From contig NIVC01000991.1 in the NCBI GenBank assembly GCA_002269645.1, forward strand, positions 327,304-391,303: a stretch of 64,000 bases of DNA. The letters are read 5' to 3'. Below the pieces are notes generated by a model. The model was not told the origin of the DNA and did not search any database. It saw only the letters and a list, made by a program, of their open reading frames with translations. Shown here in pieces: positions 14,986 to 56,463 of this stretch (positions within the stretch are counted from its first letter, which is position 1; every line of letters begins with the position of its first letter). Origin of the DNA: Macrostomum lignano (Eukaryota). Made by a program: the position numbers and the translations under genes.

Positions 14986-14989
14986 TAAA

Positions 14990-32000: not shown

Positions 32001-35000
32001 GCTATTTGATAGATTGAGTAGACTATTGAGTAGATTGAGTTATACTACTGAGTAGATTGAGTAGACTATGGGGTAGATTGAGTAGACTGCTGGCTAGATT
32101 AAGTAGACTATTAACTAGATTAAGTAGGCTATTTGATAGATTGAGTAGACTATTGTGTAGTCGTAGATTGGTTAAACGGATTGAGTAGGCTGTTGGGAAG
32201 ATTGAGTAGACTGCTATTGGTTAGACTGAGTGGACTATTGGGTAGATTAGAGACTATTGTTAAATACAGAACCAGAAAGTATTTTATTGGTTTGAAAGCT
32301 GTTTGATATTTAAAATTTTATTTTTAAAAATCTATTTAATGTATATATATGTTTAGTATATACTTGCTATTTAAAATAAATAAACGTTTCCCTTAGCAGT
32401 TTCCACCGTCAATGTTCACTCTGGCTTGCAAAGTTCAGGTAATTTTAGTTAAAGTAAAATATAAGACTATTGAGTTAGAAATCTCAAAATGCTCATTGGT
32501 GCCGTTGGGCTTGGCTGCTCTCTTCAGTTTTTGGCTTGTTGGTTTTGTTCTAATTGAAAATTTATCTGGTAAAATGTTTCACTTTCTACTTCTATTGGTG
32601 ACTGTTCAGTAGCCTAAATAGTAAAATCTGAGCTAAATTTAGCTACCTTAAATAAAAATTCAGGAGGTCATCCAGTCGGAGGTGAACAGGCAGAAGTCGG
32701 CCTCAGCCTCAGCGGAGGGCAGCGGTCAGCTGGAAGGTCGACCATCTGACGGGTTCGAATGGGCTGAACAGCTGACCGACCGAATCGAGGCTGTCAAATC
32801 TTCGGCTTTGTGAGTTCTCTTAGTACTTTAATTGATGAATAAGTTCAGTATTTGATTGAACGTAGTGATTTTAACAAAGGATTTTCCCGCTTTAGAAATA
32901 CGCAACCGACTGGGGACACGGTTAGTCTGGAGGACTACGAAGCTCTTCGGATGCACACTACTGATCTGGAGGTAAGTAGTATAGAACGGTGTTTTTAGAG
33001 GTTTCAGTTCTGCTAATAATACAATAATAGTGACAAGAATCGCTAAAGAGTCATTGCAAACAACTCACAAGGTGACTATCATGGAGCGATTATTGTGACT
33101 TTTTAACGACTTAAACGTCCGTAATTGTGACCTAAGAGGCGACTGTTGAGTCACGAGCGCATGACGCGCTTAACTTTTCTACTCTACTGACAAGTACATG
33201 TAGACTTAATAGAGTTTTTAAAGATGCCCTTTAGAGGCAACTCAGTTACGGCCCCAGAGTCGGAGGCAATAAAATGACTCAAATGGATTCTTTGACGACT
33301 ATCTTATCGTTTTTGGGCTGTCCATAATCACTTCTTTCCTATTTTACCTGCGTTACCTGTAACGACCCAGTACCGTGTCTCATCGGTTGATGACTGCGCA
33401 CTTGTCTCAACTCTCAACCCCAACTTACTGCTACATCTAGACTCAATTGAGCAGCGTCAGCGCCGAGCTGTCAAGTCTAAAGCTGAGATCGTCTCCGGAG
33501 CGACCATCGGCGTCGCAGATTGCTCAACTGCCGTCGCCTGGCCCGTCCGAGTCGATGCAGTATCAGTTCGCTTCGTTTATCGAAATTCCCGAGATTGAAT
33601 ACCTGAGAAATGTGCTGTTCAAGTATATGCTTGGAGAGAAGACCCAGGTAAGTTATTGTTTGTTTAATTCTGACATTGAGCTCTGGTTGTCTGACAGCCT
33701 GGAGTGTCTTCCTGTCAGTCAGTGTCTGACTGTCAGGAGTGTAGTGTCTGTCAGGAGTAGTGTCTGCCTGTCAGGAGCAGTTTCAGCCCATCAAGAGTAG
33801 TGTCTGCCTGTCAGGAGTGTAGTGTCTGTCAGGAGTAGTGTCTGCCTGTCAGGAGTAGTGTCTGTCAGGAGTAGTGTCTGCCTGTCAGGAGTGTAGTGTC
33901 TGTCAGGAGTAGTGTCTGCCTGTCAGGAGTGTAGTGTCTGTCAGGAGTAGTGTCTGCCTGTCAGGAGTAGTGTCTGTCAGGAGTAGTGTCTGCCTGTCAG
34001 GAGTGTAGTGTCTGTCAGGAGTAGTGTCTGCCTGTCAGGAGTGTAGTGTCTGTCAGGAGTAGTGTCTGCCTGTCAGGAGCAGTTTCAGCCCATCAAGAGT
34101 AGTGTCTGCCTGTCAGGAGTGTAGTGTCTGTCAGGAGTAGTGTCTGCCTGTCAGGAGTAGTGTCTGTCAGGAGTAGTGTCTGCCTGTCAGGAGTGTAGTG
34201 TCTGTCAGGAGTAGTGTCTGCCTGTCAGGAGTGTAGTGTCTGTCAGGAGTAGTGTCTGCCTGTCAGGAGTAGTGTCTGTCAGGAGTAGTGTCTGCCTGTC
34301 AGGAGTGTAGTGTCTGTCAGGAGTAGTGTCTGCCTGTCAGGAGTGTAGTGTCTGTCAGGAGTAGTGTCTGCCTGTCAGGAGCAGTTTCAGCCCATCAAGA
34401 GTAGTGTCTGCCTGTCAGGAGTGTAGTGTCTGTCAGGAGTAGTGTCTGCCTGTCAGGAGTAGTGTCTGTCAGGAGTAGTGTCTGCCTGTCAGGAGTGTAG
34501 TGTCTGTCAGGAGTAGTGTCTGCCTGTCAGGAGTGTAGTGTCTGTCAGGAGTAGTGTCTGCCTGTCAGGAGTAGTGTCTGTCAGGAGTAGTGTCTGCCTG
34601 TCAGGAGTGTAGTGTCTGTCAGGAGTAGTGTCTGCCTGTCAGGAGTGTAATGTCTGTCAGGAGTAGTGTCTGTCAGGAGTAGTGTCTGCCTGTCAGGAGT
34701 AGTGTCTGCCTGTCAGGAGCAGTTTCAGCCCATCAAGAGTAGTGTCTGCCTGTCAGGAGTAGTGCCTGTCAGGAGTAGTGCCTGTCAGGAGTAGTGTCTG
34801 CCTGTCAGGAGTAGTGTCTGCCTGTCAGGAGTAGTGTCCGCCTGTCAGGAGTAGTGTCTGCCTGTCAGGAGTAGTGTCTGCCTGTCAGGAGTAGTGTCTG
34901 CCTGTCAGGAGTAGTGTCTGCCTGTCAGGAGTAGTGTCTGCCTGTCAGGAGTGTAGTATCTGTCAGGAGTAGTGTCTGCCTGTCAGGAGTGTAGTATCTG

Positions 35001-35602
35001 TCAGGAGTAGTGTCTGCCTGTCAGGAGTGTAGTATCTGTCAGGAGTAGTGTCTGCCTGTCAGGTCAGTAGCATCCAAATGTCAGAATGCTACTGACAATA
35101 ATGATAGTTCTCAAACTAACAAAACCCAAACTTCAGACCCTGGCCAAGGTGATTTGCACTGTGCTGAAATTTAGCGAGCCCCAAATTCAACAGGTGCTTG
35201 ACTACGAGTCGAAGAAAGCCAATGTAAGTCCAACTATGAATTTATTGATTTTGCAATGCTAATACATATTAAAATTACGGTATATATAATATAAAAATGT
35301 TTTGCCTTTATCTATCATTCAGCAATAAAGGCTTAAAAATAAATTCTGTAAACTTCGACTTAAGCTGGTATAAATCTGTACTTATTAATTATTTAGGAGT
35401 AATATTTAAAAAAAGCGATAGATGTTGATCTGGTGGCACCTGTTCTAATTATATATATAATTAGCAGTATTATTTGCACTAATAACTAAGCATACAACCA
35501 TGCTTTTAATTAAAACAAAGTTTTAATGAACTGAAAAAAATGTTTTATTTTTATTTTTGTTTTTCATTTCAGTCCTGGTTAGCGCTGAACCGACCTACAT
35601 AG
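17079..35602 (+). CDS. GOLGA4: Golgin subfamily A member 4 (golgin-245/p230) orthologue, GRIP-domain trans-Golgi coiled-coil tether, about 2760 aa
   Basis: Exons 17079-17129, 19319-19740 (one base short of frame), 19847-19981, 20821-20946, 21022-21162, 21687-22163, 23122-23397, 23740-24171, 24599-24978, 25334-30374, 31130-31390, 32664-32809, 32896-32971, 33441-33647, 35137-35223, 35573-35602. All are GT-AG and phase-compatible apart from the exon-2 discrepancy. N-terminus MFQRLKQKIEE, then PSDLESE...QDKSLRRISELKEQ...EEKD...QVSLLK as in GOLGA4. C-terminal GRIP domain EIEYLRNVLFKYMLGE..TLAKVICTVLKFS...SW. Confidence 0.93.
20052..20272. repeat. Three ~70-bp direct repeats, each with a CCAAT box (AGCCAATCAG)
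   Basis: GAAACTGCACGCCAGCCAATCAGAGGC...GGGGTAGGGTAGGGAGAGAAA x3 in GOLGA4 intron 3. Confidence 0.8.
21255..21645. repeat. 28-bp minisatellite (AGGCCAGGTAAAATCCCAATCTAGATCT)
   Basis: About 14 units in GOLGA4 intron 5. Confidence 0.92.
22265..22910. repeat. 17-bp purine-rich minisatellite (AGAAGTAGAGTGGGGAG)
   Basis: Tandem units in GOLGA4 intron 6. Confidence 0.93.
25045..25312. repeat. 45-bp minisatellite (ATAATCCCCATTATCGATAATCCAGCATCAAGATCCCAAAGTTAA)
   Basis: About 6 units ending about 20 nt before the acceptor of the giant exon. Confidence 0.9.
25800..27990 (+). repeat. Coding tandem repeats in GOLGA4 exon 10: 84-bp (28-aa) unit x18 with 117-bp and 105-bp units x3
   Basis: EEWKTKCQEMENSIQTHESESGQLKSEL is repeated in blocks of 10, 3 and 5. 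Each block is followed by the same 39-aa and 35-aa units. Confidence 0.95.
30505..30931 (-). mobile_element. tRNA-derived SINE (tRNA-like head at 30931-30861)
   Basis: The head has an A-box (TAGCCTAGTGG), a B-box (GCTCGATTCCC) and a partial acceptor stem. The anticodon loop is only 6 nt, so it is not a functional tRNA. The 3' boundary is approximate. Confidence 0.6.
31505..32235. repeat. 21-bp minisatellite (GAGTAGATTGAGTAGACTATT variants)
   Basis: Tandem units in GOLGA4 intron 11. It explains the SRLLSRL ORF. Confidence 0.92.
33715..35065. repeat. 16/20-bp minisatellite (GTAGTGTCTG[CCTG]TCAGGA) with a ~300-bp higher-order unit
   Basis: The marker GAGCAGTTTCAGCCCATCAAGAG recurs near 33775, 34077, 34379 and 34716. 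Confidence 0.93.
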
Positions 35603-36274
35603 CCTACTTATAAACTCGACTTGTAGCAGTAGTATTGATGGACATTGTTTTGAGTCTGTGATAACACCTTAAGAAAATAGCAGCGTGAAAGAGAATATTG
35701 CTCCCTTGGTGTGCATATTTTAATTTATCTCACAATACTTGACTCAACTGTTTACAGTTTTCTTTTTAGTTTGAAAGCTAATACATAATTAGCTGGTATT
35801 ATTAATCTAGCTCCATATACTGTTTGCGTTTGTCTATTTAAAATTTAGTCTAAAGAAATAATAAAATAGCTCACAGCGACCACAGCACAGCCTCGTGACT
35901 TTTCATACATTCTTTTTGTGTAAAACCGTGTTGCTAAACTATTAATTACCATTGTTATCCGATATTTGGCAGTCAGTTTTATGGATTTATTATATTTGCG
36001 TGTTTCCGCCAATTTCATTTTTACTGTTTAATTAGCATCTCTGTTTTTAGCCTGTTCATTACGACTGTGTTCCGTGTGACCCATTTCATTTTTTGTTGTT
36101 TTGTTCCCGTTTTTAGCCAGGTATTTGTTGAATTTTTTCTCTTGAAATAAACTTTGTGGACTGCGTTAAACTTGCATGAAATTACATGCTTCCTGTGCAG
36201 ATTCCCACTTCCTGAGAGGCCATTAACGATAAAAAATACTTTTCGGTATGCTTAACTACTTATGCTACTTTATG

Positions 36275-36550
36275 CCTCCCAGATCCTCAGTTGCTCGGCA
36301 GCCTTCGAGAACCTCAGTTGCTGGGCAAGCCTCCCAGATCCCCAGTTGCTGGGCCAGCCTCCCAGAGTGTCAGTTGCTGGGCCAGCCTCCCTGAGTGTCA
36401 GTTGCTGGGCCAGCATCCCAGATCCCCAGTTGCTGGGCCAGCCTCCCAGAGTGTCAGTTGCTGGGCCAGCCTCCCAGATCCTCAGTTGCCGGGCCAGCCT
36501 CCCAGATCCTCAGTTGCCGGGCCAGCCTCCCACATTCTTGGTTGCCGGGC
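36275..36550. repeat. 28-bp minisatellite (CAGTTGCTGGGCCAGCCTCCCAGATCCT), same family as 40933-41690 but inverted
   Basis: Direct unit comparison. It lies between the convergent 3' ends of GOLGA4 and EHBP1-like c. Confidence 0.9.
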
Positions 36551-37080
36551 CGCACTGTTAGTTTCGCAGTTGACTGTTGACTGCCTGCGCCGCAGGCAAT
36601 ACAGTACAAATTAAAAAGTGAGAATTCCGACTATGCAGTATTTTATTTACAACGGGCTCAAAAAATCATTTCAAAATATTTCGTTTTTATTATAAAAAGT
36701 TGTAGACAGAAAAAATAGTTTTACTCTACAGGCAAACGAGTTGGTTCTGTCTGAATAATAACATTAACTGTAATAAGCTGTTAGTCACACAATGGAACAA
36801 GTTAACGGCAGAAAGCCTATGTGCGAAGAATGCAACAAAACGACAGGGAGAGATCAAAATGAGTCTAAGTTACCGGAATGTTAAACACTAAGGCCAAAAA
36901 CAAAAAATGTTTAACTATTTAACAGACTTGTCTACTCATATCTATGAGAATTCATTTTTCCAAGAAACGAAAGTCAAACTATCCCATATCCTAAGGACAG
37001 ATCCCAGCACGGTAAAATGAAATCGGTTGAACTGACACTGAATCACAGTTTAATACTTGTGCACGCGCCGACAATCGGCC

Positions 37081-40000
37081 TCACAGCAGGCTGCATGCCT
37101 GCCAACTGCCTTTACTAGCATCAACAACAGCATCGGCAGCAGCTGCCTGACAGATCGCCCTGGTGGCCATCTGCTGCTCAGTAGCCGAACGAATCTCCAA
37201 GCGATCCAGCTGAGCGAGCAGTCGGTCTCGCCTTTTCAATTCTCTGGCCAGCTCTCGCGACAGCTGCGGCTCCAGCGACTGGCATTGGCCTGAAATGCGT
37301 TTATTGGGTTTTAATGGTTGCTATAAGTCGGTGAGATGCTTAAACCGAGGGCGCCATCCGTCCCCTACAACCAGTGCTGATGGCAATTCTGTCCATTCCC
37401 ACTGACTCCTGAGTACATACAAGCACTCATTTTAGCGCCGCAGGCACTCATTTTAGCGCCGCAGGCACTCATTTTAGCGCCGCAGGCACTCATTTTAGCG
37501 CCCGCAGGCACTCATTTTAGCGCCCGCAGGCACTCATTTTAGCGCCCGCAGGCACTCATTTTAGCGCCCGCAGGCACTCATTTTAGCGCCCGCAGGCACT
37601 CATTTTAGCGCCCGCAGGCACTCATTTTAGCGCCCGCAGGCACTCATTTTAGCGCCCGCAGGCACTCATTTTAGCGCCGCAGGCACTCATTTTGACGCCG
37701 TAGGCACTCATTCTAGCGCAGCAGGCACTCATTTTGGCGCCTCAGGCACTCATTTTGGCGCCGCAGGCACTCATTTTGGCGCCGCAGGCACTCATTTTAG
37801 CGCCGCAAGCAGTCATTTTAGCGCCGCAGGCACTCATTTTAGCGCCGCAAGCACTCATTTTAGCGCCGCAAGCACTCATTTCGGCGCCGCAGGCACACAT
37901 TTTGGCGCCGCAGGCACTAATTTTAGCGCCGCAGGCACTCATTTTGGCGCCGCAGACGCTCATTTTAGCGCCACAGGCATACATTTTAGCGCCACAGGCA
38001 CACATTTTAGCGCCGCAGGCACTCATTTTGGCGCCGCAGACGCTCATTTTAGCGCCACAGGCACACATTTTAGCGCCACAGGCACACATTTTAGCGCCGC
38101 AGGCACTCATTTTGGCGCCGCAGACGCTCATTTTAGCGCCACAGGCACACATTTTAGCGCCGTAGGCACACATTTTAGCGCCACAGGCACTCATTTTAGC
38201 GCCAGAAGCACTCATTTTAGCGCCTCAGGCACTCATGCGGCGCTATCTTTCGTCGCCCTGAAGCAACGTTATTGATTTCCATAACGGGTCACAAGTCACA
38301 CAAGTCAAATGAATATGACCGCGCGCGGAATAGAACCAGGGGTCGTTAAGCGCGAGAGTCAGCCATGTTCGCCCTCCCCCGCATCACCTCGTCCTCACCT
38401 GCCTGCAGATGCCTGCGAATCCTTCGTTTTAGCGATTCCAACCGATTTAACTGTTGCAGTTCCCGCTGCATCAGCTCCAACTGTTGCCACCTGTTGTGCA
38501 GCAGCAGCCGGCGCATCAGCAGGCTGTACCAGTCGGCCAGCAGGCCTCGAACTCCGGTAGCCACCGCGCCAGAACCCGGCGCCGCAGATCTACTCAAACA
38601 GTCGCTCAGATCGGCGCACAACCGGTTCAAACAGCACCGCTCATCAACCAGTTCCTGTTGTCGACGGATCAACAGCTGCATAGCGGCGTCGGGGCTGCGA
38701 TCGACAATGTCAACAATTTCGACATCCTGCATGTCAGTCTGGTGGTGGTCAATCTGATCGCAGTGGGGACTACTCAAGGCGAGACAGTGCCTCAACTGTT
38801 GGAGAAAGTCAAGCACGGTAGGAACGTCGGGAGTTCGTCGGCTGATCAGTTCGGCTGGGTCCGGCAGTCTGGGTGGAAGGGATACGGAGAGGCACAATAA
38901 AATCGGTACCCAGGCCAAGAAGTCAATTTAGGTTATTTTACTGCCTGGGACTCTGAGGCGCTTCAATAGGGACTCTGGGGCTGAAGAGTCACTGAGTTGC
39001 GTCTGAATGAGTTGATTTTTTATGAATCAAAATCATATACTCAGAAAAATTGAAAAGCCGCCACTCTATGCGCCAGTGAGCAATATTTCTCTTGGACTAT
39101 TCTGAAATAAAAGACGCGAGAAAACTGGGTAGCTTTAATCCGTCCAACCCTTACACACCGCTCCCTTCACTTCATTCCTCAACTCAAGTCTGCCGCGGCG
39201 TAGTTAAGTTGCGTCACTCGCAAAGATTGAGAGACTTCACCTGCGCTCTCAAAATTGGCGTCCACAGACGGAATCTTCTGTGATGGCGACTTTTCCATGT
39301 TGCTGGGTAAATTTCGAAATACCAACTGGATTTGTTAGAAATTTGAGCGCTAGCAAGACTCTTAGACGACTTTCACGTAACGACAGCAGCTCACGTGACT
39401 CAACAGGCGCTTCTACAGTTGTAACCTTTTCAACGGGACAAGCAGTACGTCCTCACCTGGTCACCCCCAGCCGTCGAGCAGCCTCAGCAGCCATCAGATG
39501 GCACTGCAGCCAGCCAGAAGGCCCAGTCGCAGCCAGTTCAGCAGCCGCCCCATAGTCCAACAGCCCCGGCCTGTGCCGCTCAACAATAGCGCAGAAGGCC
39601 AGGCCGCTACGAAACGAGGTGCTGAGATTTTGTACAACAGCTCCGGGACAATTAGCTGTTGATTCCCTAGCCCAGGTGAACAATCGTTCCAGTTCTGACA
39701 TGTCTAAATCTGACAGACTTCTGTTGGCTTTGATCGTGACCGCCTTTGATTGATTTTCTGTCACCGTGTCAGACTGATCTACCGGTATTGATTGCGTCAA
39801 TAACAAGGCTAACGGGTTTTTTACAATGGAGTGTAGAGTGAGGCTGACTGATCCAGAATCGATCTGAAATTTGTTATAACTCAACTAAATTATCATAACT
39901 CATTTTCGCAGATTAGCTTTATAGCAACGAATTATTAACTGCAATTCAGCGTAGCATAGCAACAACACGGTACAAAATTAACATGGCAACAGCATAGCAA

Positions 40001-40882
40001 CAGCATAACAGCATAGCAACAGCATAGCAACAACATAACAACAGCGCAGCAACAGCATGGCAACAGCATGGCAACAGCATAACAGCATAGCAACAGCATA
40101 GCAACAGCACAGCAACAGCAGAGCAACAGCACAGCAACATCATAGCAACAGCACAGCAACATCATGGCAACAGCACAGCAACATCATAGCAACAGCACAG
40201 CAACATCATAGCAACAGCACAGCAAGATCATGGCAACAGCACAGCAACATCATAGCAACAGCAGAGCAACAGCACAGCAACATCATAGCAACAGCACAGC
40301 AACATCATGGCAACAGCATGAAAAAAGCATGAGAAAACACAGAAACAGCAAAGCAACCTTTTTAGCCATCCGCTCGCTAGGCACTAAATCCAATTGTAGC
40401 TCCAAACTCTTCTCAATGCCAGCTGGATCGATGAGATCTAGCGACGCCAGATCTAGCTGGCACCGGGCCAACGGTTTAATCCTAGTCGAACTGAGAACAG
40501 AAGACAGAGGAGACCTACGCAGAAGCCGCTGTCCATTCCCCTGACTGCAGCGATGCTCTTCAAGTGTGACCGTCACATTGGTTGCGGACAGAGAAGTCGG
40601 TTCAGAATCTCTAAGCAGCATCGAGCCTCTAAAACATTTCTTTGCCTTCGGAGTGGACAGAATGACAGTCTGTGGATTGCTAGACCAGTCAAGACGGCAG
40701 CGCCGAGGGTTGGACAGGCAGGCCGACCAGCTGCTTGGCTCTGTGCTAGCCGAGACGGTTGATGAAGTTGAAGATGAATCAGGAGATGAAGCTGACAGTG
40801 TCACACGAAGATTACCAGGGTTGAAGCCTGCTGCGCAGATTAACGAAGCTGACGAAATGCGGGCCTTGAGCTGCACTTCCGC
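37081..40882 (-). CDS. EHBP1: EHBP1-like paralogue c: NT-C2 + CH + bMERB + CaaX (CSLL); start exon not found
   Basis: Exons 40882-40358, 39863-39457, 38868-38399, 37289-37081. NT-C2: LICAAGFNPGNLRV, WSACLSNP, LARCQLDL. CH: LFTWARE...STSFRSGLAFCAIVERHRPGLLDY. bMERB: LLADWYSLL...L; ELKRRDRLLAQLD. Ends QACSLL*. Confidence 0.85.
37421..38235. repeat. 21-bp minisatellite (GCAGGCACTCATTTTAGCGCC), same family as the array inside the 11287-11803 element
   Basis: Reverse complement of the 11.4-kb unit. The flank GGCGCTAT..GTTATTGATT.CCA also matches. It lies in the last intron of EHBP1-like c. Confidence 0.92.
39965..40320. repeat. 11/22-bp CAA/CAG-rich repeat (CAGCAACATCATAGCAACAGCA)
   Basis: Intronic array between the NT-C2 and CH exons of paralogue c. 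It gives the MLLCCC ORFs. Confidence 0.88.
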
Positions 40883-40932
40883 CTGCAATAACGAAGAATT
40901 GGAGACTGGGAATACTCGACTTCTGCTTTTAC

Positions 40933-41690
40933 TGCTGGCCCAGCAACTGAGGATCTGGGAGGCTGGCCCAGCAACTGAGGATCTGGGAGGCTGGCCCAGC
41001 AACTGACACTCTGGGAGGCTGGCCCAGCAACTGAGGATCTGGGAGGCTGGCCCAGCAACTGGGGATCTGGGAGGCTGGCCCAGCAACTGGGGATCTGGGA
41101 GGCTGGCCCAGCAACTAGGGATTTGGGAGGCTGGCCCAGCAACTGGGGATCTGGGAGGCTGGCCCAGCAACTGGGGATCTGGGAGGCTGACCCAGCAACT
41201 GGGGATCTGGGAGGCTGGCCCAGCAACTGAGGATCTGGGAGGCTGGCCCAGCAACTGAGGATCTGGGAGGCTGGCCCAGCAAGTGACACTCTGGGAGGCT
41301 GGCCCAGCAACTGGGGATCTGGGAGGCTGGCCCAGCAACTGAGGGATCTGGGAGGCTGGCCCAGCAACTGAGGGATCTGGGAGGCTGGCCAAGCAACTGA
41401 GGATCTGGGAGGCTGGCCCAGCAACTGGTGATCCGGGAGGCTGGCCCAGCAACTGGGGATCTGGGAGGCTGGCCCAGCAACTGAGGGATCTGGGAGGCTG
41501 GCCAAGCAACTGAGGATCTGGGAGGCTTGCCCAGCAACTGGTGATCTGGGAGGCTGGCCCAGCAACTGAGGGATCTGGGAGGCTGGCACACCAACTGAGG
41601 ATCTGGGAGACTGGCCCAGCAACTGAGGATCTGGGAGGCTGGCCCAGCAACTGGGGATCTGGGAGGCTGGCCCAGCAACTGGGGATCAGA
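40933..41690. repeat. 28-bp minisatellite (GGGAGGCTGGCCCAGCAACTGAGGATCT)
   Basis: Tandem units between paralogues b and c. It produces the CWASLPDPQ ORFs. Confidence 0.93.
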
Positions 41691-41992
41691 CAGACAGACA
41701 CTAGAGGATGGGGGACAGGGGACACTTCAAAAACATCAGTGAACAAGATCAGATAAAGTACAACAGTACATGTATATGACTGTAAAATCCATTCAATATC
41801 AACGCTAAATCATTTTGAATTTTATTTACATAAGAAAGTCGTTCAAAATAAGAGATTTTTTAAGAAAGCGAACGCAAATGATGCAAAAAACAAAAAAGGG
41901 CCCCGATCGGTTATGAAAGACGAGATTATGAGATTATCAAAATGGGATTTTCTACTATAGAAAGTTCTCTCGCAATACTCAAGTTACTCAAG

Positions 41993-42941
41993 TCACAGAA
42001 CGGCACACGATGACCAGTCAATTTGAAGAGCCACAAGTGACTGAGTCCTAAAGTGAGATTGCGCTTCTAGTGAGTACACCACCAGGCAGTTGTCGCGTTG
42101 ATTGTCAAACTCTCCAGCATCCAGAATTACCCAGTCATCTTCATCGTCACTAAAGTTCACCCGCTGGCCTGAACCTCTTAGAGGCGCCTGTCTACCAAGT
42201 CGATCTCGCAGTTGGCGCAGAAATGCCCCAATTAGTGCAGGGCTTGGGATGCGATGAAGCACCAGATCTGCCGGATCGGGGACTCTGAAGTGTGTCAAAA
42301 GCATGGAAACCTACTATATTGTTTTACTTCTATATCAAGGCTTACGAGGGAATTGCTAAGGGGAGGCTTTAATTTTTCAAGGATTCCAATAAAAATTTTT
42401 CGTTCCCTTGCATTTTGCGAGTAACCAAATATCGACAACATCGAAAATGACGGCATCAGCTTCGCACCTGTCAACGCCCAGCTGTCTAGCGGCTGCAAAC
42501 GCCAAACGATGATTCTCACGCATGTCGTTAGTAAGAAAATTGTAATCAATTAGCCAAGGTGCAAATCTATTAATTATGGCGCAAAATGCCAGACCATTGC
42601 GAAACGAGGTATGCCGATTAGAGATCTGCACAAATCGATAGCCTTGGCTGCACTGCTGGCTCCAAGCCAGAAGGCTGTCCGTGAACTCGCTTTCTAGAGG
42701 AGAAGCTTGAAAGTTAGCGATCGAGTCTGGGCTGGATGGAAGTGGCTCAACAACTTGACTGAGACTGCTCACTGATGATGACGGATGCTGCGGCTCGGGC
42801 CGTGGCAAGTTTAGTTCAGACGCAACAGTCGGACAGTGCAATCGGAGAAGCAGGGACAGGCTTGCGAATGCTACCTGTTGCACAGGTTTTAATTGGAATT
42901 ATAGGATAGGCTTAGATACCGGCTGGAGTCCCTAAAGAAAC

Positions 42942-43040
<99 letters not shown>

Positions 43041-43045
43041 CCTCT

Positions 43046-43094
<49 letters not shown>

Positions 43095-43113
43095 CATCTA
43101 TCTATCTACCTCT

Positions 43114-43184
<71 letters not shown>

Positions 43185-43189
43185 CCTCT

Positions 43190-43246
<57 letters not shown>

Positions 43247-43275
43247 CATCTATCTATCTGTCTATCTATCTATCC

Positions 43276-43335
<60 letters not shown>

Positions 43336-43950
43336 GTCTATTTATCTATCCAAAGTGAAAACTATCAAAGACGAACATTTTCCTCATCCTAAACTTGGCT
43401 TATTAATTCTAACTTTACCTCATATTACGCTCTAACCTAACTGCTTTACCTTTTTAGACTTGCTCCGAAGCTGCAGCTCTGCAAGCCATTGATTTCCATC
43501 ATTGACAGCCCGAGCAATGCCCGCCAGTTCAAGGATCTTTACCGATCTACTAGCAATAATCTTGCACTCTGCGGTGCTAGCCAAGCTTCTAGTAGCAGCA
43601 GATTCTAACAGGGCAAATTTCCACAAATCAGACGGGACGCAAGAGAAGACGAATGCGACGGAGGAGTCGCCGCAGTCCGCGGCAGTGCCGCAGAAGCGAC
43701 GGGCGTTGGCGGAATTCGCCGATAAACTCCAACACTGCGGCTCCGTGCGGTGAAGCCAACGACACCCTTTGCCTTTGCGCAGCGACTTCCTTAACAGACG
43801 ATCAAGAACGCCACTGCCGTCAGGTTTTCTGATTGTTGCAGCATCGTTTGGAACAGCAACTGCCGACAACTCACGGAGAGGACGCTTTGACTTCGGAGGG
43901 GACTCAACTGAGAAGCACGCAAAGCTGACGATGAGCTGCTGCTGCTGCAT
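41993..43950 (-). CDS. EHBP1-like paralogue b: NT-C2 + CH + CaaX (CAVL), no bMERB, 399 aa
   Basis: Exons 43950-43450 (ATG), 42874-42468, 42284-41993. NT-C2 strands [30 protein letters not shown]|[10 protein letters not shown]: LLAWSQQ...[24 protein letters not shown]|[15 protein letters not shown]. Ends SSCAVL*. AATAAA near 41825. Confidence 0.82.
42942..43350. repeat. (TCTA)n microsatellite with CCTCTT interruptions
   Basis: Fills intron 1 of paralogue b. Confidence 0.95.
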
Positions 43951-44186
43951 AGCTGCAGAAACAAGAAAAGTTAAGAGTATTATAAATTGTTTTCATCAGA
44001 TTGCTTTTGTCTGAGCTCAGCTAACTAAATTGTCTTTCCAGACAGGCCAATCCGCTCCCAGACAAAAGAGCTTACACGAGATTCGCTTTCATAAGCTCGA
44101 AGTCTCTATCCGACCTTCGGGTCCTTTGAAACTCCACAATGGCAATCCGGCACGCTCAAAGTCTGTCTCTTTGATCTCAGCTCTCT

Positions 44187-44189
<3 letters not shown>

Positions 44190-44249
<60 letters not shown>

Positions 44250-44900
44250 TTTTTCTCTCCTCTCCTTTTGTCTCTCGTCTATCTTTCCTTGGGTATTTTT
44301 CCTCTTTCCTCTTGTCTTCTCTCTTGTCGCCTCTCTTGCCTTTCCTTTCTGCTCTAATCTTTAATCTTTCGTCTCCTCTTTCTTTTCTATTTTCTCTAAT
44401 CTCTCGTCTCCTCTTTCTTCTCTAATCTTTCGTCTCCTCTTTCTTTTCTATTTTCTCTAATCTCTCGTCTCCTCTTTCTTTTCTATCGTCTCTAATCTCT
44501 AATCTCTCGTCTCCTCTTTCTTTTCTATCGTCTCTAATCTCTAATCTCTCGTCTCCTCTTTCTTTTCTATCGTCTCTAATCTCTAATCTCTCGTCTCCTC
44601 TTTCTTTTCTATCGTCTCTAATCTCTAATCTCTCGTCTCCTCTTTCTTTTCTATTTTCTCTAATCTCTCGTCTCCTCTTTCTTTTCTATCGTCTCTAATC
44701 TCTAATCTCTCGTCTCCTCTGTCTTTTCTATCGTCTCTAATCTCTAATCTCTCGTCTCCTCTTTCTTTTCTATCGTCTCTAATCTCTAATCTCTCGTCTC
44801 CTCTTTCTTTTCAATCGTCTCTAATCTTTAATCTCTCGTCTCCTCTTTCTTTTCTATCGTCTCTAATCTCTAATCTCTCGTCTCCTCTTTCTTCTCCTCT
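44190..44900. repeat. (CT)n microsatellite followed by a ~35-41-bp pyrimidine-rich minisatellite (TCTCTAATCTCTCGTCTCCTCTTTCTTTTCTATCG)
   Basis: Directly visible. Confidence 0.88.
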
Positions 44901-45483
44901 CTACTCGATTACTTCTCCTTTACTATCTCATCTCTTATGGAATATGAATTAAAAAAACGCTGTTTATTGTATACACGAAATCAGATTGACATTTTTGCAG
45001 CTTTCTTTTCTGCCTTGGGTTGTGGGATATCGAAGCTTCACATTCTAGCCAAAGAAAAACTTTATTAAACTTTAAGTCAGTTGTTGACAGAGAATTTCTG
45101 AACTATTGTGTTGCGAGACCATCAGTGTCAGGATGGTCTAGGCGTTGCTGATGTATCCTAATGTATCATCTGCATCCACCTAAAACAACTTCAATTAGCT
45201 ACAAAATTGTTATAGCTAGACAAATAACAAAACACACGAGATAAGAGGATCAATCTAGGTTTTTTCCGCGTGTTTCTATATATTAATAAAAAAATATTAA
45301 AACCCACACACTGTGATTGTTATGTTGTAAAAGAAGTACAGCCAAAAAATAATCGATAAAATTTGGTAAAATTCGGAAATTTGGTAAAAAACACAGCTGA
45401 AAGTAGATTTTGTTTGAAAAAAGTGAGATTGTGTTTTTGGAAGATACGAAATCTTCTCTAATCTCTAATCTTGTAATTTGTTA

Positions 45484-45646
45484 GCACTCGGCAACATGTT
45501 AAAACTTCCAACCCTAAAACCAATGATCAATAATAATAACAATGACAATAATAGATTAAATCGGCTCAAATGGCCAGCGTGCAACCGACAGCTCGATCCT
45601 CACCAGCTTTAGACTTTAGTGGAAACTTTAACATGTTGCCGAATGC
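45484..45646. mobile_element. 163-bp miniature inverted-repeat element
   Basis: 27-bp TIRs GCACTCGGCAACATGTTAAAACTTCCA / TGGAAACTTTAACATGTTGCCGAATGC with 3 mismatches. No TSD seen. Confidence 0.5.
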
Positions 45647-46005
45647 AGGATTTCAGGAATGTACTTTTAGATATTGTATAGATAAACAGCAGTAGATGCA
45701 ATAAAAAAACAATCCTGCTTGCGTAAATTGGTTCAATTTTGACGCTTCAATAAAACTGTATAAAAAATCGCATTTGTACACTATAATCTTGTTTGCCTGA
45801 AAGTCAGATATAAGAACTGAAAAAATTAGGTTTTTTCGCTATAAATTTGGTTTGTTTCGCGAGCATAAAAATTCAAACTCCAACTTTGTCCTCTGTGTGG
45901 CATTCTTCACTTTAGCCATTAGCCTTTCTGCCATGGCATATTCTTAACTTGATTGGCTTAGTTTTAAAACCCACACGTAGGAGGAACGTTAGAAAAAGCA
46001 AATTC

Positions 46006-49000
46006 CTACATAACACAGCAAGCCGATGCAGCATTTTTAGCAGTCGACTTGTCTGCATCGCTGACCGAGTCAGACTGCATCAGCTGCTCGAGCTGTTCAG
46101 CATCAACAAACTCCCAGTCCAGTTCCCAATCGGCATCCGATACAGAAGCGCCGGAGGCTTTGAAAAAGTCGCGAAGACGATGCAACAGTTGCACATTTTT
46201 CTGGTCTGTACCGATAGAATTCGAAAGCGACTGATGTGTCGAACGTGTCGCTGTAGTGGCGCCGGACTCAGCAGCAGATTGCCTGCGCAGAGTATTTGAA
46301 TAACTATAAACGAATAGCTTCAAACGAATTAATAATAACAATACAGTAATTGATTACACCTGGCGCAATCGGGCTATTGCGCGGCGCATCTGAAGGCTGC
46401 GTACGGCTGTTCAGTCCAAGGACTGGGGGATGTCGCCAGTCGCCACAAACTCTCAATTACCCCAGTGGGTCCAGTAGGTCGAGAATCGAACCTCCGACCT
46501 CTCAGTCGTGGGTCCGACGCTCTAACCACTAGGGAGTAAGACGTTTGCTTGCGGGAAGTTTGCTTGCGGAATTTTGATGTCTGCTTCCTAGAAACTCGCA
46601 ATCACAATTGCAAGATTTTAACTTGCCGAATTATTTTCTTGTCTGCTTGCTTGTTTTGATTGCTTGTGAAGTTAGTCAGTCAATTATTACTTACTACAGA
46701 TGCTTTGCAAGTGGATTCTTATCAGCGTCGACGTAAACTGACTTGACACTAAGCTTTCAAACTAGGCTTATAGAGTTTCATTCTAAGAATTTAGTATATA
46801 GAAATGATGTACATTAATGTACAATGTACGTTCATTTCCAAAAAATCTATTCTGTACACTTCGGTGCCTAAATCATTCGATATGTGCATTGTTCGAAATT
46901 GTGTCCAATTTTTGTTGAAAATGTATTCCCAGTAAAAAACTCAATTATTCCATTTCTGCATTAGGAGGGCTTTTCAAATCCGTCATATCCTCATACAAAA
47001 TCATAACACTATAGGCGACTTCCACGAATCTTAGAAAATAAAAATTAGAAATACAAGAGCTCAATAATAGGTTCTTTAAGGTTCCGCAAGAAAACTGTGG
47101 CTGGCAAACCTCGGCAAGCAAAATTTCTGCAAGCAAATTTCGGCAAGCAAACTTCGGCAAGCAAACTTCGGCAAGCAAACTTCGGCAAGCAAAGTTCGGC
47201 AAGCAAATTTCGGCAAGCAAACTTCGGCCAGCAAAGTTCGGCAAGCAAACTTCGGCAAGCAAACTTCGGCAAGCAAACTTCGGCCAGCAAACTTCGGCAA
47301 GCAAATTTCGGCAAGCAAATTTCGGCAAGCAAAGTTCGGCAGGCAAAGTTCGGCAAGCAAAGTTCGGCAAGCAAACTTCGGCAAGCAAAGTTCGGCAAGC
47401 AAAAGTCCCGCAAGCAAAGTTCGGCAAGCAAAGTTCGGCAAGCAAAGTTCGGCAAGCAAAAGTCCCGCAAGCATGGTTGAAGGTTAAGTCTACCGAATGG
47501 AGCATAATTGTTACACAAACTCATTAGTAACTGTTAGTGACCACTCTCACCGTTCAATGCCGAGAACATTAGCGGCCTCCATCACCATAGCAAACCTGCG
47601 AGCGTTGCCTCCAGTCCCGATGACAGCTCGAAGATCAATTAGATCCGGTCTGTGCTTGTGAATGATGGCGCACAGAACCACACCGTCGCGAAATCCCGCA
47701 ACAGCCCAGTCTGAATTGCACACCAGCGGATAGCTTTTCAGCGCCTCCTTCGTCCACGAAATAAGACTGTCAGTGAGTTCCGGGAATTGTTGGCGCGACT
47801 CTTGGTGAGAAACAACAGCAGGCATTTGATTCGGCAAATGGCTCCTGGAACTTCTAGCGAGAAGCGACTGCAGCTGAAGCGTATCATTTATATTTACTCG
47901 TGTCCTAGCGATATCGCGCAATGCTTCATTTGACTTCAGCGAATCCAGCCTCAGCTCTGATTGATTACCCGACTCAGGAATCGAAGTAGTACTACTCAAA
48001 ATAGAGAGATTAAACTGTTTGTCATCGTTTGTAGTTTGGCAACTTTGCAAACCGGTCACTGCAACTGGGTCCTCGGCAGCTGCATCAACTAGAGACTTCT
48101 GCAAGCCGGTCACTGCAACTGGGTCCTCGGCAGCTGCATCAACTAGAGACTTCTGCAAGCCGGTCACTGCAACTGGGTCCTCGGCAGCTGCATCAACTAG
48201 AGACTTCTGCAAGCCGGTCACTGCAACTGGGTCCTCGGCAGCTGCATCAACTAGAGACTTCTGCAAGCCGGTCACTGCAACTGGGTCCTCGGCAGCTGCA
48301 TCAACTAGAGACTTCTGCAAACCGGTCACTGCAACTGGGTCCTCGGCAGCTGCATCAACTAGAGACTTCTGCAAACTGGTCACTGCAACTGGGTCCTCAG
48401 CAGCTGCACCAACTAGAGACTTCTGCAAACCGGTCACTGCAACTGGGTCCTCGGTAGCTGCACCAACCAGAGGCTTCTGCAAGCCGCTCTCTGCAACTGG
48501 GTCCTCAGAAGTTGCACCAACCAGAGGCTGAGCACCTTGAGTACCCTGAATCAAGGCATCCTTGTCTGACGACAGCTCTGCTAACGTTTGAGAAGTATTT
48601 GATTGGTTCGTAGCGAGGGCCTGCGCTTTGGAAAAACACGGCGAAGTTACTGGTTCATCAGAGCCACCACCACCAACATCGGAGTCGTTTAGTTGCTGAT
48701 TTGGCCTTAGAAATCCTTCATCAGGATTTTTAATCCCGATTGTATAGACGGTTAGCGACACACTTGCAGCAGTTAGTTGTAATGTGGGTAAAAAGTGAAT
48801 GAGTGAAAAAGGTATTTGTTATAGCCACTCTAATACTACTTACAAGTAGGAAGCTACACTTCCAAATAGTGCAACCCTAATTACATAGAGTTCGGAAAAA
48901 CTCCACTGACCAGTCTAGGATCGGTGGGCGTCAGACTGTAAGTCGCTAATTCAGAAACTCTCTGCTCAATTAGGTCAGAGCTGACAAACTCAGCCAAGTT

Positions 49001-49339
49001 GATGCGACATCGAGCTACCTCAACCCGGCTATTAGGCATGATGGTCTTTCGCTTCTTAGTCTCAACTTGTAGTCGCCAGATCTTGTCTTGATAGCGGCCG
49101 CGCTCCGTTGAATCATTTCGGAATTTAAACTTGGCCGTTAAATCAACAGTTTGAGGCGAGAGCCAATTAACGCAGCGAACGCTCGGATTGGCTGCCTGTG
49201 CCGACCAATCAGAGAGCTCCGTGGAGCGCCGTTTGGTCGATTTAACTAAAGCAACGCCTAACTGACTCGGTTGGAATTCTGGGCAGCAATCGACCGACAC
49301 GCGGTGGAAGCTGACGGTCACGTGATACTTTACGGTAGG
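46006..49339 (-). CDS. EHBP1-like paralogue a: NT-C2 + 18-aa repeat linker + CH + CaaX (CCVM), no bMERB; start exon not found
   Basis: Exons 49339-48911 (or -48885), 48776 (or 48762)-47551, 46282-46006. NT-C2: VDCCPEFQPSQL, WSAQAANP, QDKIWRLQVE, VARCRINLAEF. CH: LISWTKE..FRDGVVLCAIIHKHRPDLID..LHRLRDFF. Ends SACCVM*. Confidence 0.82.
46330..46531 (-). mobile_element. tRNA-derived SINE, 5' end truncated by a Mutator-like element
   Basis: TAGTGGTTAGAGCG (A-box) ... GGTTCGATTCTC (B-box), followed by a non-tRNA body and a simple AT-rich tail. Confidence 0.7.
46532..47475. mobile_element. Mutator/foldback-like element related to 7144-7749, with an expanded 15-bp array (CGGCAAGCAAACTTC) at about 47100-47475
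   Basis: The left end GGGAGTAAGACGTTTGCTTGCGGGAAGTTTGC resembles GGGAGCACGACGTTTGCCCGCCGGAAGTTTGC at 7144. The inverted 15-mer array is on the right. The right terminus and TSD are missing. Confidence 0.6.
48044..48530 (-). repeat. Coding 54-bp (18-aa) tandem repeat x9 (AAAEDPVAVTGLQKSLVD) in EHBP1-like a
   Basis: 54-bp period (48061 and 48115), in frame within the large exon. Confidence 0.95.
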
Positions 49340-49789
49340 CTGGAAAAGTGTATGGAAGCATGCGTGCTATAGGATCACGACAGGTGCAAGGTACAGGTGT
49401 AATTTTTTAGCACTTTAATTATAAACTGCCTATTACTTTATATCATACTATACCACTCTACTGATTATATATTAACCGGTTGTTTTAAGCGTCCAAAATC
49501 AGTCAGACAGCTCAAAATCAAATCAAATGCCAACACTTTCTAGTAATACTTGACACGCACCCTTGACAAAAAAGGAATCGTCGCATCATTGCGATCAAGC
49601 CAAACTACTATAGTGTATTGAATATGTTTAAGAGTGGAAAAGTTAAACCTGTTATACTGCAGATCTACCATAGCGCGTATATGCTAAGTTGACACAACTA
49701 TTGAAACTTGAAGTTAAAATGAATTCGAACTTGAAGACATTCAGTTATACATGTATCTACTAGTAAAGTGAATATTTCAACTGATTAAG

Positions 49790-50360
49790 CTGTAATCGTT
49801 TAAGTGTATTGGTATACAAGTGTCTATTGTTTAAGTGTGTTGGTGTCTGTCGTTTAAGTGTGTTGTTATACAGGTGTCTTTCGCTTAAGTGTGTTGTTAT
49901 ACAGGTGTCTATCGCTTAAGTGTGTTGTTATACAGGTGTCTAACGTTTAAGTGTGCTGTTATACAGGGGTCTATCGCTTAAGTGTGTTGTTATACAGGTG
50001 TCTATCGTTTAAGTGTGTTGTTATACAGGTGTCTATCGTTTAAGTGTGTTGTTATACAGGTGTCTATCGTTTAAGTGTGTTGTTATACAGGTGTCTATCG
50101 TTTAAGTGTGTTGTTATACAGGTGTCTATCGTTTAAGTGTGTTGTTATACAGGTGTCTATCGTTTAAGTGTGTTGTTATACAGGTGTCTATCGTTTAAGT
50201 GTGTTGTTATACAGGTGTCTATCGTTTAAGTGTGTTGTTATACAGGTGTCTATCGTTTAAGTGTGTTGTTATACAGGTGTCTATCGTTTAAGTGTGTTGT
50301 TATACAGGTGTCTATCGTTTAAGTGTGTTGTTATACAGGTGTCTATCGTTTAAGTGTGTT
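49790..50360. repeat. 31-bp minisatellite (GTTTAAGTGTGTTGTTATACAGGTGTCTATC)
   Basis: 31-bp period, near-identical units. Confidence 0.95.
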
Positions 50361-51189
50361 ATAGCCTAGACTGCAACAAGCTATCCTTAGAACTATTATA
50401 GTTATACTATTACCCCTATTAGCAGAGAAGAACAACAAGAAAACGATAAGATCAATAACCGAAGAGAATTAAAGTTAGCTACCTGTCAATCAATCACAAA
50501 AGGCAGAGAGAAGTAAGCAAACAGTGCGGCTAGTTATAACAACAAAAGAAACCAGCACGCAACGATAATTGAATTCCTCGAAATAAAGTATTTATTAATT
50601 AGCGCACCGTTCCACACTCACGCATCATTTTATGGTTGTATTTATGGATAAGAAAACGATAATTAAAAAGTATTATACTAGTAAATTTATGGATTTAATA
50701 GTAAATAGAAAAGGCCAGAAGACACTAGCCATATTCGCAACCATATTCAATAACTGAAGTCTATTAAATGTCAAATGTTGATATTCAACTCAACTTAACA
50801 ATGTGTGCCAGTCACAATCTTAATAGATGGAATTATTGGCAATAATAACTAATAAACTTACTACTACATACTTAAAACTGGTTTCATTTTTAAGCACAAA
50901 AACTATTGTAAAGAATGCAGTTCTCCGTTCAAACAAAAAGATAATGCACAATTGATCTTATCAGCAATATTTTAGCTTACTATAGGTATCTACACAAGTG
51001 CCCCAGAAGTTTTGCTCTCGGTTAAAGAAAACTCCTGTTTTTCGTCTACTTACTACTTTGAGGCCTATTTAGTATAAATTACCACTTTAACTTACTGTGT
51101 AGTGTAGAAGTTGACCAATGTCTAAACGGCACATTTTTATCAGTTTTATCTTAATGTAAGGCCTTTGACTGCCGCTCTAATTTTCCGGA

Positions 51190-55100: not shown

Positions 55101-56463
55101 GACATGTGTGTGCTGCTAGCATGATTAGAGACCTGTGTGTGCTGATATGCTAGCATGATTAGAGACCTGTATGTGCTGCTAGCATGATTAGAGACCTGTG
55201 TGTGCTGATATGCTAGCATGATTAGAGACCTGTGTGTGCTGATATGCTAGCATGATTAGAGACCTGTGTGTGCTGATATGCTAGCATGATTAGAGACCTG
55301 TGTGTGCTGATATGCTAGCATGATTAGAGACCTGTGTGTGCTGCTATGGGTAGCATGATTAGAGACCTGTGTGTGCTGATATGCTAGCATGATTAGAGAC
55401 CTGTGTGTGCTGATATGGGTAGCATGATTAGAGACCTGTGTGTACTGATATGGGTAGCATGATCAGAGACCTGTGTGTGCTGATATGGGTAGCATGATTA
55501 GAGACCTGTGTGTGCTGATATGCTAGCATGATTAGAGACCTGTGTGTACTGATATGGGTAGCATGATTAGAGACCTGTGTGTGCTGATATGCTAGCATGA
55601 TCAGAGACCTGTGTGTGCTGATATGGGTAGCATGATTAGAGACCTGTGTGTGCTGATATGCTAGCATGATTAGAGACCTGTGTGTACTGATATGGGTAGC
55701 ATGATTAGAGACCTGGGTGCTGATATGCTAGCATGATTAGAGACCTGTGTGCTGATATGGCTAGCATGATTAGAGACCTGTGTGTGCTGATATGGGTAGC
55801 ATGATTAGAGACCTGGGTGTACTGATATGGGTAGCATGATTAGAGACCTGGGTGCTGATATGCTAGCATGATTAGAGACCTGTGTGTGCTGATATGGGTA
55901 GCATGATGGGTAGCATGACACAAAAAATACCTGTTCAATCGAATTGGCACATCGGACATGAACTCCACACCGCCAGCAATGCATACTTGAGCAGCCCCGG
56001 TTGCTAGCAAGCCCATACAGGTGGTGATAGCCTGATTAGACGAGATGCAAGCTTGAGTAACCGTATGAGCCGGAATCCGGTCAGAGTAGCCGGCGCCCAG
56101 AGCCGCCTCCCTAGCAATGTTACTAGTCTTAACCTCTTGAATAACCGTGCCCATAACAATGTAGTCAACAATGGACTTATCCAGCTTAGTCCTATTAGCC
56201 AGAGTCAGTAGGGAGTGCCTAGCCAAATCGTGCGGCATCAAACGCTTATAATCGGTGCCGCTCTGCAGAAACGGAGTCCGGACGCCTTCAACTAGAACTA
56301 TGTTGGGCCGGTCCGGTTTAGCTAAGCTGCGTCGCTTTGAATCGGCGGGTTTCGCGGCAGCCGGAGCCGCGGACAACAGGCGGACAGACTGTCGGTGCTG
56401 CTGTTGCAGCAGAAATCGACCAGAAGAGGCGATAGGCGCGTTTAAATTTAGAGAGCGAAGCAT
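52199..56463 (-). CDS. HADHB: Mitochondrial trifunctional enzyme subunit beta (3-ketoacyl-CoA thiolase), about 478 aa
   Basis: Exons 56463-55931, 53947-53671, 52825-52199. Basic/hydroxylated N-terminal presequence. Motifs [86 protein letters not shown]. Confidence 0.96.
52885..53450. repeat. ~57-75-bp tandem repeat (GACTGACAGACCGTCGGGAACTTCAACACGATGATTG...)
   Basis: About 9 units in HADHB intron 2. Confidence 0.88.
53968..55915. repeat. ~30-34-bp minisatellite (GCATGATTAGAGACCTGTGTGTGCTGATATGCTA)
   Basis: Occupies nearly the whole of HADHB intron 1, ending within about 20 nt of both splice sites. Confidence 0.96.

Follow-up and report, generated by a model that had tools for sequence, protein, structure and literature searches.

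Do EHBP1 paralogues that are without the bMERB domain and still end in a CaaX box make working proteins, and if so which of them? The question is raised by three genes, here called a, b and c, which lie in tandem on the minus strand of a 64,000-nucleotide stretch of Macrostomum lignano DNA (the window). Positions 36800–50400 of the window are locus L004 on contig NIVC01000991.1 of the Mlig_3_7 assembly (GCA_002269645.1), at 100% identity. The locus has been assembled four times, as L001, L002 and L003 besides the window itself, with the same gene order in all; L002 and L003 are near-identical to each other. The original prediction saw in the trio a three-member trafficking module. On the evidence given below it is probable, with a good deal of room for doubt, that the trio is a tandem array of three old, fast-evolving EHBP1 paralogues, of which b looks functional and is without bMERB, c has been rewired and a is being lost. 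Of the three, b is the only one credible as a bMERB-less, predicted prenyl-anchored EHBP1 derivative under selection.

Gene models were made from stop-to-stop open reading frames (ORFs) plus the DNA at their edges, spliced in frame across GT..AG introns (Table 1). The GenBank annotation already holds RNA-seq-derived models for a, b and c, each with its own stop. The Mlig_3_7 annotation is RNA-seq based, with mapped spliced-leader and poly(A) sites taken as the gene boundaries at which transcription units were split (PMC5730564). The trio genes are lineage-specific and are already present in the annotation as hypothetical proteins; no mention of their identifiers was found in paper texts or in the supplements of PMC5816591.

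Descent of the trio from EHBP1

M. lignano has a canonical EHBP1 of 796 residues (P0017; BOX15_Mlig009844g3 / Mlig026541g5; named EH domain-binding protein 1 in UniRef), in which Pfam finds NT-C2, CH and bMERB and which ends in CSVQ. It is encoded at another locus, L005, on contig NIVC01001258.1. At L005 a KDEL-receptor gene lies upstream of EHBP1 and a convergent GRIP-domain gene downstream, and the trio has the same neighbours. The introns agree as well, those after SKK (phase 0) and after GVPR (phase 2) of the canonical gene being at identical positions in the trio. These two, one interrupting the CH and the other lying ahead of the last NT-C2 strand, are the oldest; the canonical gene has two further introns that the trio is without. 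Because the flanking KDEL-receptor and GRIP-type genes have paralogues at L005 and the introns coincide, the trio would appear to be a tandem triplication of an EHBP1 copy inside a KDEL-receptor/EHBP1/GRIP-gene segment that was duplicated long ago. Given the separate canonical EHBP1 on NIVC01001258.1 and the position of the trio in a paralogous segment, a, b and c are best read as EHBP1 paralogues, none of them the EHBP1 orthologue. The proposal that the trio consists of EHBP1-derived tandem paralogues is therefore supported by the matches to P0017, the common introns and the paralogous flanks, while the accompanying view of c as the EHBP1 has to be given up.

Several finer details had also been read correctly. 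The phase-2 intron follows G[IV]xR in all three genes (GIER, GVDR and GVTR in a, b and c), an acidic motif follows each CH (DWEFVD, DWVILD and DVEIVD), b and c have CH exons of equal length (407 nt), and the three reading frames end in CCVM, CAVL and CSLL in the window, with a and b stopping without a bMERB. The phase-0 intron before the last NT-C2 strand is found in b and c (KK at the junction), whereas in the window copy of a the donor after RL (RL/GT, where the slash marks the splice junction) has no in-phase acceptor.

When c was compared with P0017 three collinear matches were obtained, in NT-C2 (E 2e-9), CH (E 8e-21) and bMERB (E 7e-4). An exhaustive HMMER search with c returned 1053 proteins at E<=0.001, all of them matched through the CH. 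Among the eight top-ranked matches that were looked up were two EHBP1 proteins of other animals, one MICAL-like protein, P0017 and one Opisthorchis protein with the full set of NT-C2, CH and bMERB; most of the best non-self matches are annotated EHBP1 proteins, and multi-CH proteins are also among them. This search found no orthologue of c in other species, and cross-species dN/dS is thus impossible. Word-indexed homologue searches with a, b and c found only M. lignano relatives, and a look for other truncations with NT-C2, CH and CaaX among the short CH-containing matches gave fragments only.

All three CH domains are recognised by Pfam (PF00307, cut-off 26 bits), with 30.9 bits in a, 56.9 in b and 42.5 in c. 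All are closest to the EHBP1 CH, and they are 37%, 49% and 44% identical to that of P0017, b being the closest of the trio. Overall the trio members are 24–49% identical to P0017 as against 77% between the KDEL receptors of the two loci, a divergence far above that of the neighbours. Between the members the CH identity is 30–37%. The CH of b shares just 37% identity with that of c, and the duplication that separated these two genes is therefore old. In a neighbour-joining tree of CH domains the monophyly of the trio had a weak bootstrap of 65% and its internal order was not resolved.

In its domain order, NT-C2, CH, bMERB and CaaX, c is like EHBP1 of human (Q8NDI1, PMC7442826) and of M. lignano. 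The trio differs from EHBP1 in having no N-terminal WKRLQRVGK segment, in the absence of bMERB from a and b, and in CaaX boxes that end in M, L and L (a, b and c) and not in the near-universal Q: among 35 canonical EHBP1 proteins 31 end in CxxQ and none in L or M. The NPF motifs of EHBP1 are not found in the trio, and flatworm EHBP1 is likewise without NPF.

Domains and conservation of b and c

NT-C2 and CH domains had been assigned to all three genes. While the CH is present throughout, the NT-C2 varies. In a it is found by Pfam (PF10358; 29.8 bits, cut-off 25.2), by a hidden Markov model (HMM) of the EHBP1 family (64 bits) and by HHalign (probability 98%). Such family HMMs, for NT-C2 and for bMERB, were built from about 30 canonical EHBP1 sequences. 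With Pfam, whether the input was raw ORFs or spliced models, NT-C2 went undetected in b and c, as did bMERB in c at E<=1; the NT-C2 of c is seen just in targeted tests (family HMM 9.3 bits, HHalign 83%). In b the NT-C2 is weak. The pairwise match to P0017 has an E of 0.013 and takes in only the C-terminal half of the domain, the family HMM gives 6.8–8.2 bits, of which 8.2 was reached by 1 of 2000 shuffles, and HHalign gives 2–4%. The AlphaFold model of the b N-terminus, from a 6-sequence alignment, has a pLDDT of 33 and was unusable. The NT-C2 homology of b rests mainly on its position and on the shared intron.

No bMERB was detected in b or a, either by Pfam (PF12130) or by the EHBP1-family HMM. 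Gene b is intact and ends in CAVL in all four assembled loci, with its 1.2-kb ORF open throughout, and its exon 3 matches that of L001 at every position and differs from that of L002 by 5 substitutions. The dN/dS of b is 0.31–0.48 across loci, with an excess of synonymous changes against L002 (p = 0.011). For the exons taken together, mismatch across copies is 1.6% compared with 3.2–3.6% in unique non-coding sequence, and the indels are multiples of three in 5/5 cases in exons compared with 4/30 in non-coding DNA. It would seem likely that b is under purifying selection, and its conservation argues for function. The contrary reading, that a and b are functionless transcribed relics whose CaaX boxes are leftovers yet to decay, would be in keeping with the visible decay of a, with the barely recognisable NT-C2 and unconfident AlphaFold model of b, and with the relaxed selection expected of a redundant genome (PMC5730564). 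We consider it quite unlikely: the b/c duplication is old and yet the b frame is open at every locus, its indels are in frame, its last exon and dN/dS are as given above, and of the trio it is b that has the CH most like that of canonical EHBP1.

The last four residues of each of the three genes are of the CaaX type. Such ends occur in about 1% of the 595 stop-to-stop ORFs of the window, a count that probably includes the three of the trio, and it is unlikely that two extra CaaX ends arose by chance. The last seven residues are W-S-S-C-A-V-L in b and W-Q-A-C-S-L-L in c, with W-x-[AS]-C-[AS]-[LV]-L in common. Although short, this match suggests that the CaaX box of b was probably inherited, the tail being spared when the bMERB was lost internally. 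As the tail of b resembles that of c, there is no need for b to have re-acquired a CaaX box, which was one of the two possibilities raised originally. The proposal that CaaX boxes at two different truncated termini point to selection holds for b, which is intact and conserved in all four copies, but not for a, as described below.

A CaaX box in which X is leucine predicts geranylgeranylation. Human EHBP1 is a farnesyltransferase substrate, and engineered delta-CaaX and isolated-domain constructs have shown that endosomal localisation depends on the CaaX box and that the CH is masked by the bMERB (PMC7442826). In these terms b is like an EHBP1 from which nature has deleted the bMERB while leaving the prenylation box. 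It differs from the constructs in being a natural gene, in the degenerate state of its NT-C2 and in the type of prenyl group predicted for it. A more ambitious interpretation would make b a selected, 'uncaged', geranylgeranyl-anchored EHBP1, made from one spliced-leader-resolved precursor with the rewired c, such that a constitutive and a differently gated membrane-actin arm stand beside the canonical Rab8-gated EHBP1; this is a tentative idea that we think rather unlikely to be right as a whole.

The acidic motif of b, EDDWVIL (residues 351–357, window 42100–42130), fits the LC3-interacting LIR/AIM consensus, in which an acidic stretch precedes W-x-x-L, and this may be coincidental. At the same position a reads DWEFV and c has no aromatic residue.

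The bMERB of c scores 27.9 bits with the EHBP1-family HMM (E 9e-11 at Z=1), in addition to its pairwise match to P0017, and the AlphaFold model of the c C-terminus has three long helices with a mean pLDDT of 71. Searched with Foldseek, this model had nothing at or below an E of 0.001; generic helical bundles come ahead of the bMERB structures, which are 7th, 10th and 31st (non-significant, E 0.45–1.2). A phmmer search of the c C-terminus against PDB sequences likewise gave non-significant matches only, with the bMERB domains of EHBP1 and MICAL-cL at E 1.8–9. The bMERB that had been predicted in c is therefore supported by the family HMM, the pairwise match and the three-helix model, though not by Pfam or Foldseek, and c carries a bMERB homologue that Pfam misses. 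The MICAL-like and MICAL-cL proteins, which are Rab8-family effectors, also combine a CH with a C-terminal bMERB (PMC5026484). They resemble c in having a CH followed by a three-helix bMERB, and those of Mical-cL and Mical-3 are among the top, non-significant, Foldseek matches. The MICAL-like proteins, however, are without NT-C2, and the sequence searches put the trio with EHBP1.

Aligned with human EHBP1, whose numbering is used here, the bMERB of c keeps W1119, F1120 (as Y), the helix-2 LR motif (as IR) and R1189-D1190. The helix-1 LR motif is changed to LS, helix 3 is six residues shorter in the hydrophobic patch L1177–V1186 that contacts Rab8, and in the CH of c the places of human L534 and T538 are taken by P and D. 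Mutation of these residues in human EHBP1 abolishes the binding of bMERB by the CH (PMC7442826). Because the Rab8- and CH-binding residues are changed in the alignment, Rab gating of c cannot be assumed, and both its Rab and its CH interface may be altered. The contrast that had been drawn between a Rab-gated c and ungated a and b is therefore no more than a supposition.

Gene c is intact and ends in CSLL wherever it is visible among the loci, with a dN/dS of 0.45–0.55 and a synonymous excess against L002 (p = 0.039). An older UniRef model of c (P0002) reads ...HLQAEGQCQ where GenBank and the present model have ...HLQAGQCQ, at 38399/37289. This one-residue difference, at the junction of the bMERB intron, suggests that a splice site 3 nt away is used as an alternative or was called wrongly.

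Lesions of gene a

Every one of the four assembled copies of a carries a lesion. In the window it is the intron-1 acceptor that is affected: where the sister loci have TTACAG/GTAACT the window has TTACAACTAACT, both 48777 and 48776 being substituted, and the GenBank model of this copy (P0010) starts at 48776 without the NT-C2 exon. In L001, L002 and L003 there is a common deletion of about 239 nt in the last exon, by which the last CH helix, the acidic motif and CCVM are removed. The deletion leaves a ending in ...ATTAPLHYNVPPTCGF before the stop, and the transcript-derived proteins P0009 and P0011 have that end. The L003 copy is additionally frameshifted by 1 nt (P0012). The CCVM exon thus survives in one of four copies, and that window copy is the one that has lost the intron-1 acceptor. 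Exons 1 and 2 of a are still well conserved, with a synonymous excess against L002 (p = 4e-5), and for this reason the lesions look recent, consistent with a loss in progress in a redundant genome; that of the M. lignano DV1 line is highly redundant (PMC5730564).

The lesions might instead be artefacts of assembly or annotation, with a in the animal an intact NT-C2-CH-CaaX gene. The assembly was made from noisy long reads and has redundant contigs, the 1-nt frameshift of L003 relative to L002 resembles the errors of such an assembly, and an in-frame alternative splice is available in the window copy. The same 239-nt deletion is, however, present in three separate contigs and matched by the ends of transcript-derived proteins, and the acceptor change consists of two adjacent substitutions with no indel, at a locus whose model has no exon 1. 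We regard artefact as a very unlikely explanation.

The state of a also bears on the trafficking module as it was originally conceived, in which all three genes are selected, c is the Rab-gated EHBP1, and a and b are Rab-independent, CaaX-anchored membrane-actin linkers or decoys. Several features of the locus speak for such a module: the three CaaX ends set against a chance of about 1% per ORF end, the transcript-based gene models for all three, ORFs that have outlived a divergence to 30–37% CH identity, and the synonymous excess in exons 1 and 2 of a. It nevertheless appears unlikely, with a damaged in every assembled copy, either through loss of the acceptor or through deletion of the CCVM segment, with c neither an EHBP1 orthologue nor unaltered in its Rab- and CH-binding residues, and with the CaaX box of b explained by inheritance of the tail. 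An array of old paralogues, in which b is kept and a is going, is the reading that we retain.

Exon 2 of a contains a coding tandem repeat of 54 nt in 9 copies (window 48042–48526), with the 18-residue unit AAAEDPVAVTGLQKSLVD. Among the annotated a-type proteins across loci the copy number is 9, 8, 2 and 2.

Transcript processing and the surrounding locus

The GenBank models of the trio are 5'-partial and begin exactly at strong acceptors. The first NT-C2 strand of a is not preceded by any in-frame ATG in the genome, and the annotated a-type protein P0011 begins exactly at the start of exon 1 with PTVKYHV. Exon 1 of c has no genomic ATG either, and the annotated P0001 begins exactly there with AEVQLK. 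Exon 1 of b has an ATG of its own, 2 nt past an acceptor, and the annotated b proteins P0003 and P0004 begin after ATGCAGCAG in their own loci. The spliced leader of M. lignano is 35 nt long and ends in ...TTGCATG, with a terminal ATG (PMC8629364). As a and c have no genomic ATG, their acceptors are in phase 0 and the leader ends in ATG, the AUG of the spliced leader is probably the start codon of both. The acceptor of c was considered as the ancestral intron-1 acceptor and rejected, the canonical gene encoding the stretch from Met through SKK in one exon.

Genes of M. lignano have been assigned to operons where same-strand trans-spliced genes have a repeat-adjusted intergenic distance under 1 kb (PMC8629364). 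The b-c spacer of 1110 nt, less its 754 nt of tandem repeat, comes to about 356 nt and is within this distance. The trio is like the known spliced-leader operons of the species (PMC8629364, PMC5730564) in its same-strand genes, in the acceptors right before the coding sequence, in the 5'-partial models and in the b-c spacer. It is unlike them in that published operon members are mostly unrelated neighbours, whereas the candidate members b and c are paralogues. A search of the window for the spliced leader found none, and an Rfam scan of the window gave no RNA family.

Table 1. Features of the trio locus and its neighbours, in window coordinates (a slash in a sequence marks the splice junction).
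Feature	Position	Strand	Description
a exon 1	48911–49339	-	NT-C2; starts at acceptor TTTTCCAG/, ends at donor RL/GTCAGT
a intron-1 acceptor lesion	48776–48778	-	ACAA/CTA in the window, ACAG/GTA in three paralogous loci
a exon 2	47551–48776	-	Last NT-C2 strand, linker with tandem repeat, first two thirds of CH; ends GIER, phase-2 donor
a exon 3	46006–46282	-	Long S/T-rich loop, last CH helix, acidic DWEFVD motif, CCVM and stop
b exon 1	43450–43950	-	Degenerate NT-C2-like region; donor KK/GTAAAG, phase 0
b exon 2	42468–42874	-	407 nt; last NT-C2 strand, linker, first part of CH; ends GVDR, phase-2 donor
b exon 3	41993–42284	-	Last CH helix, acidic DWVILD motif, 40-residue tail, CAVL and stop
28-nt tandem repeat	40934–41687	-	About 27 copies, 754 nt; most of the 1110-nt b-c spacer
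c exon 1	40358–40882	-	Divergent NT-C2; starts at acceptor TTATTGCAG/GCGGAA; donor KK/GTTGCT, phase 0
c exon 2	39457–39863	-	407 nt; last NT-C2 strand, linker, first part of CH; ends GVTR, phase-2 donor
c exon 3	38399–38868	-	Last CH helix, DVEIVD motif, bMERB helices 1-2
c exon 4	37081–37289	-	bMERB helix 3, tail, CSLL and stop
KDEL-receptor gene	58223–58873	-	Upstream of trio; Pfam PF00810; 77% amino-acid identity to the L005 KDEL receptor
Thiolase gene	52199–56463	-	Between KDEL receptor and a; from the L004 gene list; not at the canonical EHBP1 locus
Convergent downstream gene, part	32909–35241	+	Homologous to the GRIP-domain gene downstream of canonical EHBP1; collinear tblastx, 60–67% identity
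Intron and spacer repeats	37423–38236, 39982–40319, 42942–43350, 47082–47460, 49795–50360		Periods 21, 11, 4, 14 and 31 nt

The introns and spacers of the trio are almost all taken up by simple or tandem repeats, a different one in each, and the intron and intergenic lengths are inflated by these. The 28-nt tandem repeat GCTGGCCCAGCAACTGAGGATCTGGGAG is also present in intron 1 of canonical EHBP1 (L005, 6479–7083) and, inverted, downstream of c (36274–36551). It might be a satellite common in the genome, or else have been left over from the segmental duplication. The large convergent GRIP-related gene spans about 25000–35600 of the window. Further away, at 14001–16000, there is a 2-kb block with 62% G+C against a background of 31–53%.

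A scheme for the locus and its meaning

Taken together, these results can be arranged into a scheme for the locus. A segmental duplicate of EHBP1 would have been triplicated in place and would then have diverged far faster than its neighbours. Mature mRNAs would be made by spliced-leader trans-splicing at acceptors at 49340, about 43945–43953 and 40883, with the leader AUG starting a and c, and b and c at least may come from one precursor transcript. The bMERB of b would have been lost through an internal deletion that spared the C-terminal tail. This would leave b as a prenyl-anchored protein (geranylgeranyl by prediction), the CH of which could not be masked in cis by a bMERB and whose membrane-cytoskeleton activity would be independent of Rab binding. 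Gene c would be a divergent full-length relative with changed Rab and CH interfaces, and a would be under loss in a redundant, partly polyploid genome.

A number of points weigh against this scheme. No orthologues were found outside M. lignano and long-term constraint is not measurable. The dN/dS values, which range from 0.09 to 0.55 over the trio comparisons, come from few substitutions (10–36 per comparison), and the loci compared may be homeologues, alleles or redundant haplotigs, L002 and L003 being nearly the same. The NT-C2 character of b is barely detectable, given also its low pLDDT, and the neighbour-joining tree cannot separate one loss of bMERB in a and b from two. The a-b spacer of 2053 nt, less about 550 nt of repeats, is about 1.5 kb and so above the operon threshold. 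What can be said of trio expression, trans-splice sites and co-transcription comes from the deposited annotation and the method published for it, and the shared prefixes of the transcript-unit names, which reflect 95% clustering across loci, do no more than suggest co-transcription. Finally, the lesions of a could partly be assembly errors or be bypassed, an in-frame alternative splice in the window copy being possible from a donor AT/GTAATT at 48885 to an acceptor AAG/ at 48763.

The locus has no bearing on a long-standing open question; it is a lineage-specific expansion of a gene family, ordinary apart from b. It exemplifies a duplicated gene that has been triplicated and stripped of domains, a start codon that, with the ancestral N-terminus gone, apparently comes from the spliced leader, and the complementary decay of one paralogue, a, across the copies of a redundant genome. 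If b is functional, it would be a natural counterpart of the truncation constructs behind the autoinhibition model of EHBP1. It would then reveal what in EHBP1 can function free of Rab gating, and whether the change of the last CaaX residue from Q to L retargets the protein. As M. lignano offers both transgenesis and RNAi, b is open to test in the animal itself.

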